Source: Rebecca billardiae RCC1528
Lineage: Eukaryota; Protista; Haptophyta
Direction of reading: 5' to 3'
Assembly (NCBI GenBank): GCA_965240325.2
Contig: OZ251235.1
Span: 558,001-622,000 of the forward strand
Length of the DNA: 64,000 bases
Of the stretch, positions 54,428 to 61,594 are shown in pieces. Below the pieces are notes generated by a model, which was given only the letters and a program-made list of their open reading frames with translations, made no database searches and had not been told where the DNA came from. The translations under genes and the position numbers were made by a program. The first letter of the stretch is position 1. The number at the start of each line of letters is the position of its first letter.

Positions 54428-57400
54428 CTACATGCTCGTCTTGAGCTTGATGTGCCGATCGAGGGTGTACATGCGCAGGAGCAGCGCGTGCGCCGTGTCT
54501 GGCGGCTGCTCAGACAGCTTGGCGTCTTCCTGCCACCATGGCCGCCACTCCTTGGAGAACTGCTCCGCGCGGATGCTCTGCGCGAGCTCGTCCAGACACT
54601 CCCTGCGGGGCACGCGCGGCAGGGGGTCGATGAGGGCGCGCGCGGTGACGAGGAGCGCGAGGGGCACCGCGGGCGGGGTCACCCGGCACGCGTCGACGCG
54701 CTCGAACGCATGGCCCGACGGCGCTCGCACCTGAGCACAGACGGCTTGGCTGTGAGCTTCACACGCCACAGCCAGCGCGCGCGCGCCTCGGCCGACCACT
54801 GCGCGAGCGCGCTGTGCGGGAGCACCGCCTCGAGAGTGCTCAGCTCGATCTGCGACGCAGCGCAACGGGAGGGAGGGGAAGCGGGAGCGGGGCGGAGGCG
54901 GAGGCGCGGTGATGGCTGGGAGGCGCAGATGTGCACGCCGGTCGGGGCTGGCCGAGCCGGCTGGGCCGGGACCGCCGCACACCCAACCAGCGGGCGCGCT
55001 CGGCCGAGGCGGGACGGCTGCAGCCGCGAGCCAAGGCCACTTCCGACAGCTCAGCCACACGCGCGCGGCACGGCGCGCCTCTCCAGCGCTGCGGCGGGCT
55101 CGCACGGCGCGACGGGACGCAGGCGGCACGCACCTTGAGCTGCAGCATCGCCGCTGAGATGGGCCCCGCGTGCGGCCGGACGGGCGCGCTGCCGTCCGTC
55201 TCCTGTCGCGCGCGCTTGGCTGGCGTGGCTGGCGAGGCGCTCGCCGGCTGCTCGGGCGCGCGGGGCGTGTCACGGCCCTCGCCCGCGCCGTTCGTCGTGC
55301 CGTCGTCGTCGTCGTCGCTCACGACGAGCGCGCTCTTTCGGCGCACCGAGCGGCGCGACACGCCGCCGTGCTCGTCAGCCTCGCCCTCCAACGCCTGCGC
55401 ATCGCACACGCCCGTGCACGACGCCTGGTGCGCCTCGAGCGCGAGCGCGCCCATCCGCGCGGCCGAGAAGGTGACATGGCACACGGCGCAGTGCGAGTGC
55501 GTGCGGGGGTCGTGGAGCTCGGCGCAGAAGGTGCAGCGCTGCCAGCCGCGCGTCGGCTGGATGCGCTCGGCGCACGCGCACACGCGTGAGCGCTCGATGC
55601 CAGCCAGCGCGTCGAGCAGCGGACGGCCGCCCAGCTGCTTGGCCGTGCGCAGTGCAGCGATGGCTGCGAGGCCGAGCTGCAAGTCGGCGTCCACGGCCGA
55701 GGCCAGATCGCCCGCGGCGGCGCCGTCGGCGCCCGCCGCCGCCGCCGCCGCCGCCGCCGCCGAGGAGCGAAGCCGCGCTGTCCTGCTGGTGGAGACGGCG
55801 GTTGTGCCGCCCACCAGCTCCTCCGCAGATGGCGCAGCCGCGGGCGCGGCGTCGGCGGCGGTGCCGGCCGGCGCGGCGGCGGCGGGCGAGGCGGCGGCAG
55901 CGGCGGCGGCCGGCGCTCCCGCGAGCGAGCGCTCCGCATGCGCCTCCGCCGCCTTGGCCATCGCCGCAGTCAGCTGCGGCTGCACGCCGCTCAGCCCTTC
56001 CAGCAGCCGCGACTCGCGCCGGCCGCGCGGCCGAAGCGAGGCGAGCAACGCCTCGACCTCCGCGGCACAGCTGAGCGTGAGCCAGCGGCCTGGCCGAGGG
56101 TCGACAATCTCCGAGATGCGAGATTCGACCTCGTGGATGCTCGGCTTGGCGCCCGCGGCGGCGGCGGCGGCGGGCGCCGCGGCGGGCGCCGCGGCGGGCT
56201 GCGCCGCCTGCGCCGGCTGCTGCTCGTGCACGAAGAGCTGCGCCGCGTCGGCTCCGAGCAGGAAGTACGCGCGGTGGTGCCGGTCCCGACCGAGCGGCTC
56301 CGTGCGCACCTGGCCGAGCCGCTCGCGCAGCCGGTTGTACTTGAGGTCGAGGTGGCGGCGCACCTCCTCCTTGCGCGTGCGCAGCACCTCTGGCACCGAG
56401 CGATAGTTGGGCAGCCCGGCGAGCGCGCTCGGCTGCTGCGCCAGCCCGGGCGGCGGTGCGCCCGCGGGCGCGGCAGCGGGTGCCTCGGAAGGCGGCTCGG
56501 CGCCCACGGGCGCGGGGGCGGCGGCGGCCGCGCCGGCCGCCTTCGCAGCCGGGGCCGCCAACGCGGAGGCCGCGGGCGTGGAGGCCGCGGGCGCGGAGGC
56601 GGGCGACGCGGCGGCGGGCGCGACAACGGCAGCTGCGCCAGGAGCGGCGGCGGCGGGCGCAGCGGGTGGTACAGCGGCGGGAGCGGCGGCGGCGGGCGCA
56701 GCGGGCGCGCCGGCGCCCGCAGTAGCTGCCCCGCCCTTCTGCGCTGCCGCCGCGTCGTCGCCGCCGTCCGTGTCGGCGTCGAACTTGACGGTGACGGCCA
56801 CCGCCTCCTCGGGCGGCGCGCCCGCTGCCGCCGCCGTCGCGACCAGGACCGCGTACGCGGCGGCCTCGCCGCCGCCCAGCGCGTCGATCGCCATGAGCCG
56901 GCGGCGGTACTCCTTGCGCTTCATGTCCTGCAGCCGCTCGACGCCCGTGATCGTCGCCTCCGAGTGCCGCGAGAAGAAAGGGCTGTCGATCACGAGCTGC
57001 GCCATCAGGTGCAGCGTCTCGAGCCGCGTGCTCACCGGCAGCTCGGCAAAGCTGCGCGACACGCCGGCCACGCCGAGCGCCCGCGCCAGCTGCTTCTCGA
57101 TCTTATTGCTGCGGTAGCCACCCGGGCGGCGCTGCTGCACGGCGCGGGCTCCCGCGGGCGCGCCGGCGCGTGCGCCGTCGCCATCGCCATCGCCGTCGCC
57201 ATCGCCGTCGCCGTCGCCCTCGCCGTCGCCGTCGCCCTCGCCGTCGCCGTCGCCGTCGCCCTCGCCATCATCGTCATCCTCCTCGTCATCGTCATCGCCA
57301 CCCTCGTCCTCCGCGCCGGCATCCGCCTCGGCCTCGAGCCGGGACTCGCGCCGCGCGGCGGCGGCCGCCTCGCCACGCTTCTTTGCGTGCGCGACGGCGA

Positions 57401-57938
57401 GCAGGTGCCGGCGCAGCACCTCGGGCCAGGTGTGCGCGGTCAGCCGCTGGCCCTGCAGCCGCTCGCCCGAGCGCGAGATGAGGTCTCGCGCGATGCGCGC
57501 CGAGCAGACGAGCCGCCCGCGCGCGGGCGTGCCATGCCGATCGCTGCACACCGAGTAGTGATCCGCGATGATGAGCCGCGTGAGCAGGATGTGCGCCGAG
57601 TGGAAGAGCCACTCGCTCGACGCCGAGCCGAGCGGCTCGAGCAGCATCTGCTCCCACTCGCGCCAGCTGCACGTGCCGACCGTCCACAGCTGCGCACTCG
57701 TGAGCTCGACCACGTCTGCTGGCGGGCGGCGCGGCGGCGGCACGGCGGGCGCGGGCGGCGGGAGGTGCAGCGAGCCCTCGTCGAGGAGAATGTCCGCCAG
57801 CACGGACGCCGCGGGCAGCCGGCCGCCGTGCTTTGGGTCGTGCACCGGCTCTGCGAGCACGGTGGGCGACGCGGCCGCAGCTTTGCTCTCCGCGCCGCCC
57901 GGCGTGTCGCCACCAGCCTTTGCTGCGGGCTGCGACCG

Positions 57939-57970
<32 letters not shown>

Positions 57971-60900
57971 TGGCCGCGCTGGCGAGGCACGGCGGGCGCG
58001 TCGAGCACGGCTTGCGCAGCGTGTTCGGCCCGCCGTTCTTCGCCTTGTCCTTGCAGTAGCGGCACGTGTTACAGTCCGCCATCCTGCACGCCGTGCACTT
58101 GCCGCACCGCTTCCCCGGGCGCGAGGCGCCGCCGCCCGGCGCCGTTGCGCCGTCGTCGTCGCCGCCGTCCTCCTCCTCCTCCGCGTCCGCGCCGTCGCCG
58201 TTCGCGCCGACGGACCGAGCGAAAGAGGCGGACACGGCGATGGCCGGCGTGGGCGCCGCCGCGGAGCTTGCCGCGGGGCCGCCCACCGCCGCGCCGTCCG
58301 CCGCCGCGTCGGCTGGCGCCGCATCCGTCCCAGAGTCTGCGCCGAGCGCGCCCGCCGCGCCGCCGCGCTCCTCGAGGCGCGCCGCGGCCGCGCGCAGCTC
58401 GGCCGCCTTGTCCAGCGCGCCGCGGCGCACGCGCTCGTCGGCCGCGAGCGCCGCGTCGAGATCGTCCAGCGTCGCCGCCGGCACGACAATCGCCGCGAGG
58501 AGGCGGCACAAGTCGAACGCCTCGAGCGCGCCGCCCACAAGGGAGGGCGCGAGCAGGGCGGACGCTGGCCGCGCGGGCAGCGCGACGAGCGCGCTCCCGC
58601 CGCCCGCCGCCTCGTCGTCGCCCAGCTCGAGATCCTCCGTGAGCTCGATCTGCTTCACCGTCGAGACGGAGAGCGTGGTGCAGAAGCGGCGGTGGCCGCC
58701 CAGCGCCGAGATCGTGTCAAAGGCCTTGCCGCAGTCGCCGCACACGTACTCGCCGTCCTCGTTCTTCTGCGGCGGCGCGGTGTGGCCGGCGCGGAAGCGC
58801 GAGGAGCACGCCGAGCACAGCGTCTTCGGGCCCTCGGGGCCGGGCCCCTTGCCCGAGCACTCCTCGTACGTGCAGGTGCACCAGCCGCACCGCCATGCGC
58901 CGCCGTCGCAGAAGCGGCGGTGGCCGCCGAGCGCGCCGATCGTATCAAAGGCGCGGCTGCAGTTGTCGCACACGTACTTGCCGTCCTCGTTCTGCGGCGG
59001 CGGGGCGGTGTGGCCGGCGCGGAAGCGCGAGGAGCACGCCGAGCACAGCGTCTTGGGCCCCTCCGGCCCGGGCCCCTTGCCGTTGCACTCCTCGTACTTG
59101 CAGGTGCACCAGCCGCACCGCCACGTGCCGCCGTCGCAGAAGCGGCGGTGGCCGCCGAGCGCGCCGATCGTCTCGAAGGTGCGGCTGCACTGCTCGCAGA
59201 CGAACTTGCCGTCCTCGTTCACGGTGGGCGCGGCGGTGTGCCCGGCGCGGAAGCGCGAGGAGCACGCGTGGCACAGCGTCTTCGGGCCGTCAGGCCCGGC
59301 GCCCTGCGCGGCGTGCGGCGTGGGTGCGCGGGCGTCAGGGCGGTCGCTGCGGCGCTGCGCGCAGCGACAGCGGCGCGCGTGGCGCGCGCGCGCCGAGCGC
59401 GGGCGCACCTTGCCGGACGTGTCCATCGACTGGCAGCCGCACCACTTGCACCGCCACTCGCCGCCGTCGCAGAAGCGGCGGTGGCTCGTGAGCGAGGCGA
59501 GGTGCTCGAAGGCGCGGCCGCAGTTGTCGCACGGGTACTTGCCGTCCTCGTTCTTCTGCGGCGCGCTCGTGTACCCGGCGCGGAAGCGCATGCTGCACGC
59601 GTGGCAGAGCGTCTTCGGCCCGTCCGGGCCGGCGCCCTTCCCGTTCGCCTCCGCGATCGAGCAGCTACACCAGCAGCACCGCCACGTGCCCGAGTCGCAG
59701 AAGCGGCGGTGGCCGCCGAGCGCGCCGATCGTCTCGAAGGTGCGCTCGCAGTTGTCGCACACGTACTTGCCGTCCTCGTTGCGCGGCGGCGGGCCGGTGT
59801 GCCCCGCGCGGTAGCGCGAGGCGCACGCCGAGCACAGAGTCTTCGGGCCGTCGGGCCCGGGGCCCTTGCCAGAGCACTGCTGCTCGGTGGCCTTGCACCA
59901 GCGGCACTCCCAGTTGCCGCCGGAGCAGAAGCGCATGTGCCCGGCGAGCCCGCCGCGCTTGGCATAGCGCTTGTGGCACTTCTCGCACTCGAAGTTGAGC
60001 GGCTGCTCGCCGTCGGCGACGGACGGCGCGGCCGCGCTCGCGTCATCGCCCGCCAGGCTGTCCACGCGGCTCGGCGGCCGCTTGCCCTTCTTCGCCGGCG
60101 TGGAGGGTCCGGACGCTGGGCCGTCTGCGCCCGGGGCGCCACTGGTCGCGTCCCCCGCCAGCTTGCGCTTGCCGCCGCCGCCGCCCTTCGGCTTGGGCGC
60201 CCTGGGCGCCTTGGGAGCGCGCGGCGCGCCGTCCTTGCCCTTGCCCTTGCCCTTGCCCTTGCCGCCCTTGCCCGCGCCAGTGCCGTCGGCGCCTGCCCCG
60301 GCGGCGACGCTGCTGTCACCACCGTCGGCGGCGCTGCCGCATGCGCCGCTGCCGCCACTGTTCGCCGACGGCGCGCGGATGGGCTGCGCTGAGACGAGCT
60401 GCCCGTTCGCACCGTGCCGCGTATCGCCGCCGTGCAGCGGTGGCGGGCGCGGGATCGGGTGGAGCCGGCACGGATCGCAGACCCATTCCTGCGCGCGCGA
60501 AGGCCGAGCGAAGGCGTGTGCGCATGCGCGCAAGAGGGCGCGTGGTGCGATGTGAGCCGCGCGCGGTGCAGGCGCGAACGCGCCGGTCACGTGCTGCCCC
60601 CGCGCACAGCATGCTGTGCTCCGCGCCGCTCGGAGCCAGCCGGCACGCTGGGCCCGCCGCTTGCCCGCCCAGCTGCCCGCGCGCGCGCCGGAACGCGCGC
60701 TGCGCGCGCGCTGCATGCCGCCCGCACCTCTGGCACCGAGCCGAGCTGAGGCCTGAGGCAATCGATGTGCACGACGCGGTCGCAGATCTGGCAGAGCGCC
60801 ATGCGCTCGTCATGCGCGCGCGAGCCGCACTCCGAGCACATGTGGTCGTCCGCCGTCGCCACGATCTCGATCGGCAGCGGCGGCCGGCCCGTGGCCGTGT

Positions 60901-61594
60901 CGCCAATCACCCACTGGCGCGCGAGGCGCTCGAACGCAGCCTGCATGAGCCGCGCGAGCTGGCCGAGGTTGGACGCGTCGTCGTTGCGCGCGCGGTGCTG
61001 CATCCAGAGCATGCGCATGTCCGCGATGAACTCGTCCGGCAGGTGCGTGTACGGCGCCGCGCTCGGCTCGCCGTACAGCCGCGCGCCGATGTGCTCAAGC
61101 CCTGGCATGCCGGGCGAGGGCGAAGACGCGACGAGATGGACGCCGCCCTTCGCCTTCATGGCCTCGTACACGCGCGCGCAGCGCTGCGGCGCTTCATGCA
61201 TGCCCATCTGGCGCGGGTGGCTCGGCATCGGCGGCCGCTGCGCCATCATTGGCTGGTACTGAGGCGGAGGGGGCGGGCGCGGCGGCGCGTACATATGCTG
61301 CCCGTACATGTGCTGCGGCGGGCCGTCCATGCCGGGGCCCGGGCTGGGCGGGCACATGTAGCGCTGGTCGTGCATGTACGCGTCGCCGTGCGCCATGTAG
61401 ACGGGCATCGCTCCCACGGCCATGTGCGGCTGGTATCGCATCGGCTGCCCTGGCTCGGAGTGCGGCGGCGCGGACGCGCCCACTGGCATGCAGTGATGCA
61501 TGCCCATCGTGCCGGGAGCCATCGCTGGGGAGTATCGCGCGCCCTGAGGCGGCGCAGCGTACTCGTAGGGCGAGCCATTCGTCGGCCGGTCCAT
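54428..61594 (-). CDS. Large chromatin protein: bromo-like helices, PHD, 6 C2HC + 5 GATA fingers, CXXC, DDT/WHIM-WSD region; join(complement 60728..61594,59409..60488,55134..59303,54731..54849,54428..54602)
   Basis: PHD CSEC..LCQICDRVVHIDCLRP..WVCDPC spans intron 60489-60727. CXXC RCGKCTACRMADCNTCRYCKD..KNGG..RKPC. Also TWPEVLRRHL, LPVSTRLETLHLM, WSD-like EPLGRDRHHRAYF..LRPRGRRESRL, and C-terminal LLLRMYTLD. Four GT-AG introns give 6411 nt. Confidence 0.85.

Follow-up and report, generated by a model that had tools for sequence, protein, structure and literature searches.

A predicted minus-strand gene in the window (the whole 64,000-nucleotide stretch analyzed here) from Rebecca billardiae contains eleven zinc fingers of two types, a C2HC finger and a GATA-type finger with four cysteines, which alternate strictly with a period of 76 amino acids, or 228 nucleotides. 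This array is a real part of one long gene. It is ancient and conserved across several marine protist groups rather than newly expanded here, and it is apparently undescribed. With somewhat more confidence than doubt, we propose that the array is an ancient module, most likely a DNA-binding, targeting, or linker-DNA-sensing one, of a scaffold resembling the BAZ/ACF1-type partners of ISWI.

Layout of the array and the intron in unit 3

In-frame translation of the minus strand places six C-x2-C-x12-H-x3-C (H) and five C-x2-C-x20-C-x2-C (G) fingers between positions 58680 and 59987, in the order H-G-H-G-H-(G split)-H-G-H-G-H (Table 1). An eleven-finger array is far beyond chance. Its limits, 58677 to 59996, are compatible with the interval of 58675 to 60000 given by the first-pass annotation, whose account of six C2HC and five four-cysteine fingers in strict alternation agrees with the translation. 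All six H fingers have Cys as the fourth ligand, instead of the second His of the C-x2-4-C-x12-H-x3-5-H pattern of C2H2 fingers, and they are therefore a C2HC variant of the classical type. The five G fingers have 20 residues between their cysteine pairs, within the C-x2-C-x17-20-C-x2-C pattern of GATA ligands, G3 only after an intron is discounted.

That intron of 105 nucleotides, which the same annotation had placed in a single unit, begins with GT, ends with AG, and interrupts unit 3 in phase 0, between Lys44 and Gly45. Its excision would join G-K to G-A-G-P-D-G-P-K-T-L-C, matching unit 2, and no other unit is interrupted. Relatives share this insertion point, as judged from read-through protein sequences. 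The intron is free of stop codons, so the long open reading frame (ORF) reads through it, and the distances from one H finger to the next along the unspliced translation are 76, 76, 111, 76, and 76 amino acids. TRF reports the 228-nucleotide period in two rows (58680 to 59304, 2.7 copies, 88% matches, score 931; 59448 to 59867, 1.8 copies) because the insertion sits between them.

Could the array be a chance ORF or a noncoding tandem repeat in GC-rich DNA? The GC content is 75%, and long stop-free ORFs run in several frames; one on the opposite strand reaches 1484 aa. However, all zinc ligands are retained in every unit, Pfam E values go down to 3e-22, the AF2 models are confident, and related clusters from other organisms, about 125 in number, keep the period and the invariant residues. 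The conservation data rule this explanation out, and its probability is negligible.

Table 1. Features of the array and of the surrounding gene (positions in the window)
Feature	Position	Strand	Evidence and remarks
PHD finger upstream of array	60468..60838	-	Pfam PHD just over cutoff, first exon part; 239-nt GT..AG intron at 60489-60727
C2HC finger H1	59925..59987	-	Unit 1 = 59769-59996; translation; Pfam zf-C2H2_6 / C2CH-3rd_BIRD-IDD
GATA-type finger G1 (C-x2-C-x20-C-x2-C)	59823..59906	-	Translation, Pfam
C2HC finger H2	59697..59759	-	Unit 2 = 59541-59768; translation, Pfam
GATA-type finger G2	59595..59678	-	Translation; Pfam, highest-scoring GATA stretch in array
C2HC finger H3	59469..59531	-	Unit 3 = 59208-59540, intron counted in; translation, Pfam
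G3, N-terminal half (W-x-C-x-W-C ... G-K), exon end	59409..59450	-	Sequence, translation
105-nt GT..AG phase-0 intron within G3	59304..59408	-	Sequence; identical insertion point in relatives
G3, C-terminal half (G-A-G-P-D-G-P-K-T-L-C-x-x-C)	59262..59303	-	Sequence
C2HC finger H4	59136..59198	-	Unit 4 = 58980-59207; translation, Pfam, AF2
GATA-type finger G4, modeled singly	59034..59117	-	AF2, Foldseek, VIA
C2HC finger H5	58908..58970	-	Unit 5 = 58752-58979; translation
GATA-type finger G5	58806..58889	-	Translation, Pfam, AF2
Terminal C2HC finger H6, half unit	58680..58742	-	Translation; a lone C2HC also closes the array in every full-length relative
DDT-like segment immediately after array (E-D-L-x-L ... 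L-P ... G-x-A-L-E/Q)	58407..58676	-	Motif-level likeness to relatives only
CXXC zinc finger downstream of array	57996..58118	-	PF02008, 32 bits, E 1.3e-7
WSD (WHIM-type) motif, ORF of the array	55989..56309	-	PF15613, E 2.4e-13

Finger families and predicted folds

A Pfam scan, proposed as a check in the first-pass annotation, matched both finger types above the gathering score. The zf-C2H2_6 model scored 78.3 bits against a cutoff of 25 (E = 3.3e-22, five stretches), zf-C2H2 scored 34.3 bits against 25.2, and GATA (PF00320) scored 50.2 bits against 26.8 (E = 1.9e-13, five stretches). The GATA stretches in the window protein cover just profile positions 15 to 31 of 36; relative P0100 has one match over the full profile, 1 to 36.

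Structure prediction with AF2 covered the intron-free units 4 and 5 together with H6, and also G4 alone. The larger model has a pLDDT of 88 with no weak linkers and shows a hairpin plus a helix, the beta-beta-alpha arrangement, in each H finger. Foldseek groups the whole model with DNA-bound poly-C2H2 arrays such as those of Aart, CTCF, ZBTB24, and PRDM9 (E = 4e-5, probability 0.75 to 0.98, best 10 matches listed), at low TM-scores of about 0.2. For the lone G finger (pLDDT 81), the best Foldseek match is AtGATA18 (TM-score 0.81 to 0.83, rmsd 1.5 Å, 38% identity), and in a VIA comparison with 48,161 chains the top six matches are all GATA fingers (Z 5.3 to 3.0). On these models, the G finger is predicted to be a GATA-type treble clef, and the predictions support both folds that the earlier annotation had supposed.

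Comparison with plant-type GATA fingers (PF00320; Arabidopsis GATA18, PDB 8j48; Medicago C2C2-GATA P0099) reveals a shared four-Cys treble clef and a shared segment, G-P-x-G-P-K-T-L-C-x-A-C-x-x-R-[YF]-R-x-G, in register; the R61-[FYW]-R63-x-G65 part of the helix aligns likewise with the canonical factor P0099. The G finger differs in its loop (20 residues versus 18 in P0099), in a W-x-C-x-W-C motif that is invariant at the first knuckle, and in its five copies, each paired with a C2HC finger. It also differs in the residues with which GATA factors contact DNA. T-P-x-W-R-x-G gives way to G-K-[GSA]-P-G-P, consistent with the earlier claim that the canonical W-R motif had been replaced (by G-K-x-P-G), and the Asn of C-N-A-C is mostly Ser (at unit position 56, 98 of 162 units have Ser and 8 have Asn). 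Because T-P-x-W-R is absent, the DNA target is not predictable.

The H finger, in turn, resembles plant Q-type QALGGH fingers (PF13912; SUPERMAN/EPF) and the fingers of poly-C2H2 proteins (CTCF, PRDM9, Aart) in its C-x2-C-x12-H spacing, beta-beta-alpha model, A-L-G-G-H helix motif, and use in tandem, and the array linker H-T-G...G-K-[YF]-x-C is reminiscent of TGEKP. Unlike those fingers, it has Cys as its last ligand and lacks the Gln of QALGGH. Moreover, the C2HC fingers of the array are never adjacent, since a GATA-type finger always lies between them, and, instead of varying, their helix positions are conserved.

Among 162 distinct units of exactly 76 amino acids from 83 proteins, the invariant residues include linker positions G27, W29, G47, P48, G50, G65, and G76. 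Conservation is as strict in the linkers as in the fingers, which makes it most likely that each 76-aa pair acts as a single composite module. Each unit would bind two zinc ions, the first in a classical beta-beta-alpha finger of the plant-like x-A-L-G-G-H type with Cys as its last ligand and the second in a treble clef of the plant-like G-P-x-G-P-K-T-L-C-x-A-C-x-x-R-x-R-x-G type.

Relatives and copy history

In databases, 99 + 27 related clusters share this alternating array and its 76-aa period. Those with a labeled source trace to Aureococcus, two choanoflagellate transcriptomes, Picozoa SAGs, and an Atlas cluster dominated by haptophytes. Most full-length relatives have six H and five G fingers, a composition common to the window protein, six proteins of the P0100 clade, P0107, and P0112. 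In full-length relatives the array follows a PHD finger and precedes a WHIM/WSD region, in the order Bromo-PHD-array-WHIM1/WSD, and relative P0115 has both WHIM1 and WSD. PF27966 is also listed for some relatives. The first-pass annotation had raised the possibility that the array is already widespread in annotated families. The array does occur widely in databases, but those relatives with named sources are annotated just as "hypothetical" or "C2H2-type domain-containing," and a literature search found no published description of it.

Within the R. billardiae genome, a search with the array protein returned only itself and thus no further copies, and GATA fingers of the W-x-C-x-W-C type are restricted to the array gene. 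One ordinary GATA finger is present elsewhere in the genome.

The array had been described as recently expanded, and this description did not hold. Only units 4 and 5 of the window gene form a close pair (90.8% nucleotide identity), and, by their sequences, they alone look recently homogenized. Also, units are orthologous by position between distant relatives: P0107 and P0112 pair at units 1 to 5, with four of the five pairs starred, and P0100 and P0104 pair at units 1 and 3. Recent expansion in R. billardiae is rejected on these grounds. Instead, the array would change over time through unit duplication, sometimes with the intron included, and through local homogenization.

Because units pair by position, they are not interchangeable in the P0107/P0112 and P0100/P0104 lineages. 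This favors an array that is a sequence-specific reader, in which the units are individually distinct and all eleven fingers recognize one long DNA motif and target the scaffold to loci. The location of the most variable columns among the 162 units, at the start of the H-finger helix (13 to 16) and in the G-finger loop (35 to 42), points the same way. We nevertheless regard such a reader as unlikely. In the window gene, units 2 to 5 form one cluster, and units 2, 4, and 5 have almost identical H helices. Small conserved residues (T, G/R, A/G, G/S) occupy most of the usual base-contact positions of the C2HC helix, a pattern unlike that expected of a variable reading code, and no target motif is derivable. 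The first-pass annotation's suggestion that the array could read long or repetitive targets is conjectural.

A candidate module of a chromatin scaffold

The gene would encode, in order, a degenerate bromodomain-like region, a PHD finger, a basic linker, five pairs of C2HC and GATA-type fingers with a final C2HC finger, a DDT-like segment, a CXXC finger, and WSD/WHIM. The PHD finger is split by an intron, and its first exon part scores just over the Pfam cutoff (24.5 versus 24 bits); the order of PHD and then array is likewise found in P0100 and P0103. WSD (PF15613) scores 50.5 bits against a cutoff of 25.4 in the ORF of the array, which also contains the CXXC match. Pfam detected no bromodomain in the window, though relatives carry one, and the Pfam DDT model had no match in the 149 amino acids after the array, even at an E value of 10. 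When a profile of six full-length relatives was compared with PDB sequences, the best 60 matches listed included the bromodomain and PHD and none on DDT/WHIM.

ISWI partners of the BAZ/ACF1/RLT type have a DNA-binding domain (WAC, MBD, or homeobox) just N-terminal of their DDT/WHIM region. The array fills this slot and is therefore most likely a DNA-binding, targeting, or linker-DNA-sensing module. We infer that it binds DNA, and the domain architecture suggests that the scaffold may partner with ISWI. Several observations weigh against this reading: the replaced DNA-contact residues of the G finger, the small and conserved residues of the C2HC helix, the low TM-scores of the whole model to DNA-bound arrays, and the missing Pfam matches to DDT and the bromodomain in the window protein. 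In common with BAZ/ACF1/BPTF/RLT-type DDT-WHIM proteins, the window protein has WSD (WHIM) and a PHD match just over its cutoff, its relatives have a bromodomain and WHIM1, and the DDT/WHIM region is preceded on its N-terminal side by a module of a DNA-binding type. In contrast to those proteins, the array family has its Bromo-PHD part at the N-terminal rather than the C-terminal side, and an 11-finger array replaces WAC, MBD, or homeobox; the window protein, moreover, lacks a Pfam DDT match and has an extra CXXC finger.

C2HC fingers and some GATA fingers can mediate protein-protein contacts. The array might be mainly a scaffold for protein-protein or nucleosome contacts, in which the C2HC finger packs on the GATA-type finger or binds histones, with little DNA reading. 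The tight and invariant junction from H to G (C-D-G-G-x-W-x-C-x-W-C), the high pLDDT of the linkers, and the loss of the canonical GATA DNA-contact motif are all consistent with this idea. There is also a precedent, as evidenced by the C2HC fingers of FOG, which contact the N-finger of GATA-1 (Liew et al. 2005, PMC545545, as cited in PMC7614390). In that account, a classical-type C2HC finger works together with a GATA-type finger, as it would here, but each belongs to a different protein, whereas the contact within the array is hypothetical. A sequence search of solved structures, at E values up to 1, found no FOG/U-shaped finger; DNA-binding fingers are the top matches by both sequence and structure, and Arg61 and Arg63 on the GATA-type helix are kept as in plant GATA factors. 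A role mainly in protein contacts is distinctly unlikely.

A more far-reaching version of the composite-module idea, which we hold to be improbable, is that the 76-aa pair is an unrecognized, rigid two-zinc domain that reproduces the FOG:GATA contact within one protein. Fixed at 5.5 copies, the domain would build an extended rod, measuring DNA or reading a long motif, that places an ISWI-type remodeler. Its retention would date from before the haptophyte/pelagophyte/choanoflagellate split, unless it was passed between marine protists instead.

Multifinger arrays are normally of one finger type. An array that strictly alternates two types, and that keeps its 76-aa period fixed and its linkers invariant in very distant protists, would be a new design of extended nucleic acid-binding surface. 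Being compact and conserved, the fingers are easily expressed and tested. The patchy spread of the array (Haptista, Stramenopila, choanoflagellates, and Picozoa) poses the question of ancient origin versus transfer between marine protists. Returning to the reading that we favor, that of a module of an ISWI-partner-like scaffold, the array points to a likely DNA-targeting module of a chromatin-remodeling scaffold in haptophytes and pelagophytes, ecologically important algae whose chromatin biology is, to our knowledge, almost unstudied.

The alternating array and its gene

In-frame translation of 58602-60200 gives six C2HC fingers (H; C-x2-C-x12-H-x3-C) and five GATA-type fingers (G; C-x2-C-x20-C-x2-C) in strict alternation, closed by a lone H finger, which confirms the H/G array described in the first-pass annotation. 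The array region is 75% GC, and its consecutive H-to-H distances are 76, 76, 111, 76, and 76 aa, the long spacing being due to a 105-nt stretch in unit 3 that has no stop codon, so that the reading frame runs through it.

Positions of features in and around the array gene
Feature	Position	Strand	Remarks
Segment preceding PHD finger	60840-61200	-	Aligned by eye to the C-terminal half of the bromodomain of P0100/P0103 (full-length relatives)
PHD finger	60468-60838	-	Upstream of array; split by intron
Intron in PHD finger	60489-60727	-	239 nt, GT..AG
Stop-free frame containing array	54840-60761	-	1973 codons
228-nt period, block 2	59448-59867		TRF
105-nt stretch in unit 3	59408 down to 59304	-	Starts GT, ends AG; phase 0, between Lys44 and Gly45
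228-nt period, block 1	58680-59304		TRF; 88% matches, score 931
CXXC zinc finger	57996-58118	-	PF02008, E 1.3e-7; between DDT-like segment and WSD
WSD	55989-56309	-	Pfam; beyond CXXC
Hexanucleotide coding repeats	57161-57266, 60233-60263	-	TRF and translation; encode an acidic (Gly-Asp)n run and a basic (Gly-Lys)n run
Antisense stop-free ORF	55938-60392	+	1484 aa, Arg/Ala-rich; no family match

Domain scans of the gene fit an ISWI-partner-like scaffold. Pfam calls no bromodomain in the segment preceding the PHD finger, which is possibly a degenerate bromodomain or one broken by an unrecognized intron. Immediately downstream of H6, a segment common to the relatives (E-D-L-x-L ... L-P ... G-x-A-L) is reminiscent of DDT; the Pfam DDT model does not match it. 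A CXXC finger is listed for none of the relatives found with the array or the ORF as the query and may be a lineage-specific addition in this 70-75% GC genome. The antisense ORF is unlikely to be a gene; the very high GC content most likely accounts for it.

Finger identity and a probable composite unit

Pfam assigns five stretches of the array to zf-C2H2_6 (E 3.3e-22, 78 bits) and five to GATA (E 1.9e-13, 50 bits), the latter spanning profile positions 15-31 only, that is, the G-P-x-G-P-K-T-L-C-x-A-C-x-x-R part. In the H finger, the helix has the pattern [TS]-[IM]-x-[AG]-L-G-[GS]-H-[RK]-R-x-C, which we take, as a lead only, to be akin to the plant Q-type QALGGH fingers modeled by PF13912. For the G finger, the reference was P0099, a canonical plant GATA factor from Medicago found among the weak matches. 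The G-finger helix is in register with that of P0099 (C-x-A-C-x-x-R-[FY]-R-x-G); however, the array fingers have G-K-x-P-G-P in place of T-P-x-W-R, and their loop is two residues longer.

Predicted structures agree with the treble-clef and beta-beta-alpha folds expected from the first reading of the sequence. AlphaFold2 modeled intron-free units 4-5 plus H6 (177 aa, 31-row alignment) with a mean pLDDT of 88, a pTM of 0.52, and every residue at or above 70, as hairpin-helix fingers alternating with hairpin-hairpin-helix fingers. Foldseek groups the whole model with the DNA-bound poly-C2H2 arrays of Aart, CTCF, ZBTB24, and PRDM9 (E 4e-5 to 1e-3) with a TM of about 0.2, the low value that array flexibility would predict. 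When a single G finger was modeled alone (55 aa, pLDDT 81), the best Foldseek match was Arabidopsis GATA18 (prob 1.0, TM 0.81-0.83, rmsd 1.5 A, 38% identity), with GATA-4, AreA, GATA-1, and GATA-3 also present, together with a handful of small, unrelated zinc domains scattered between them. VIA-align of the same finger against 48,161 representative chains placed GATA fingers in all of the top six positions (Z 5.3 to 3.0).

Conservation was assessed in 162 distinct units of exactly 76 aa from 83 proteins. All eight zinc ligands are invariant among them, as are three residues of the H-to-G junction (G27, W29, and W33, within C-D-G-G-x-W-x-C-x-W-C), a further set of G47, P48, G50, L54, R61, and G65, and the G-to-H linker residue G76. 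The residues that vary lie at positions 5-16 (hairpin and start of the helix in H), at 35-42 (loop in G), and at a few places in the helices. Because the linkers are so conserved and pLDDT is high across them, we argue that the H and G fingers of a unit would act as one module.

Age and possible growth of the array

A word-based protein search with the array as the query returned 99 clusters of 242-770 aa, and the whole ORF added 27 clusters of 1085-3450 aa. Most of them also alternate H and G, with a maximum of 7 H and 6 G, and 194 of about 300 H-to-H spacings are exactly 76 aa. The labeled sources are the pelagophyte Aureococcus anophagefferens (NCBI), the choanoflagellates Stephanoeca diplocostata and Didymoeca costata (EukProt), the Picozoa single-cell assemblies COSAG01 and COSAG02, and a haptophyte-dominated ESM Atlas cluster (score 0.97). 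Each label is the one given by its source, and transcriptome or single-cell contamination is possible. Full-length relatives of about 2000-2300 aa (P0100, P0102-P0105, and P0110) carry bromodomain, PHD, array, and WSD in that order, and P0115 has WHIM1 in addition to WSD. The 6H+5G count is common to the window gene, the P0100 clade, P0107, and the Stephanoeca protein P0112.

In a maximum likelihood tree of 39 units, units 1-5 of P0107 each have the same-numbered unit of P0112 as their partner, four of these five pairings being starred; P0100 and P0104 match in this way at units 1 and 3, and window units 2-5 group together only weakly. Window units 4 and 5 are 90.8% identical in DNA, whereas every other pair is 63-81% identical; in P0001, another relative, units 3 and 4 look like units 5 and 6, respectively. 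The proposal of a recent expansion is therefore rejected, given that the array is kept in relatives, that units pair by position, and that only units 4 and 5 are close. Our reading of these sequences is that the array is probably old, its units having diverged before the lineages of the compared relatives split, with apparent local homogenization in the window's lineage and apparent duplication in P0001. Across the 72-Mb genome (41 contigs), the array is present in a single copy, and the W-x-C-x-W-C GATA finger type does not occur outside the array gene.

Excising the 105-nt stretch would restore G-K|G-A-G-P-D-G-P-K-T-L-C, identical to unit 2. Several relatives have an in-frame insertion at exactly this point, following G-K, as judged at the protein level in products of gene finders reading through introns; the first inserted residue is mostly Val, which a GT codon gives, and past the insertion the finger continues with G-P-G-P or M-G-P-S. 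The insertion lies in unit 3 of P0002 and P0021 and in two successive units each of P0043, P0046, P0062, and P0063, the two in P0043 being alike. These comparisons support a phase-0 intron position conserved between the window gene and its relatives, and they suggest that the array can grow via a duplicated 228-nt phase 0-0 exon plus its intron, with intron loss later.

Other architectures were also observed. In P0116 and P0122, the array and WSD are accompanied by HMG-box and YABBY-like domains (PF00505, PF04690, and PF09011), and P0115 also has DNMT1-RFD, Agenet, WRC, and Tudor-like domains; several chromatin-protein architectures therefore make use of the array. The 3182-aa transcript model P0112 (S. 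diplocostata, EukProt) places seven PDZ domains and an SH2 domain before array and WSD, which is either a genuine fusion in holozoans or the product of chimeric assembly. A separate small family, P0083-P0098, has two to four tandem G-type fingers of the W-x-C-x-W-C / G-P-x-G-P-K-T-L-C subtype and lacks C2HC fingers; several members end in a C-terminal RING (PF13920), and the window's genome has no counterpart.

A proposed role in chromatin

Neither the two finger types nor this type of scaffold is new. We found no description in the literature of a conserved 76-aa composite repeat in which H and G strictly alternate, and source-named database relatives are labeled just "hypothetical protein" or "C2H2-type domain-containing protein."

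The domain that precedes DDT on its N-terminal side (WAC, MBD, or homeobox) is DNA-binding in BAZ/ACF1, BAZ2, and plant RLT proteins. The array lies between the PHD finger and the WHIM-type region, and the closest sequence and structure relatives of both finger types are DNA-binding fingers. From this slot and these relatives, we propose that binding DNA is most likely the array's part in an ISWI-partner-like scaffold. It could instead chiefly make protein contacts; C2HC fingers of FOG bind the GATA-1 N-finger (PMC545545, cited in PMC7614390). As a DNA-binding module, it might read one long DNA motif or sense linker DNA without sequence preference. The usual base-contact positions hold small conserved residues, and with T-P-x-W-R lost as well, a preference for GATA sites should not be assumed. 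DNA reading by the array is a plausible idea.
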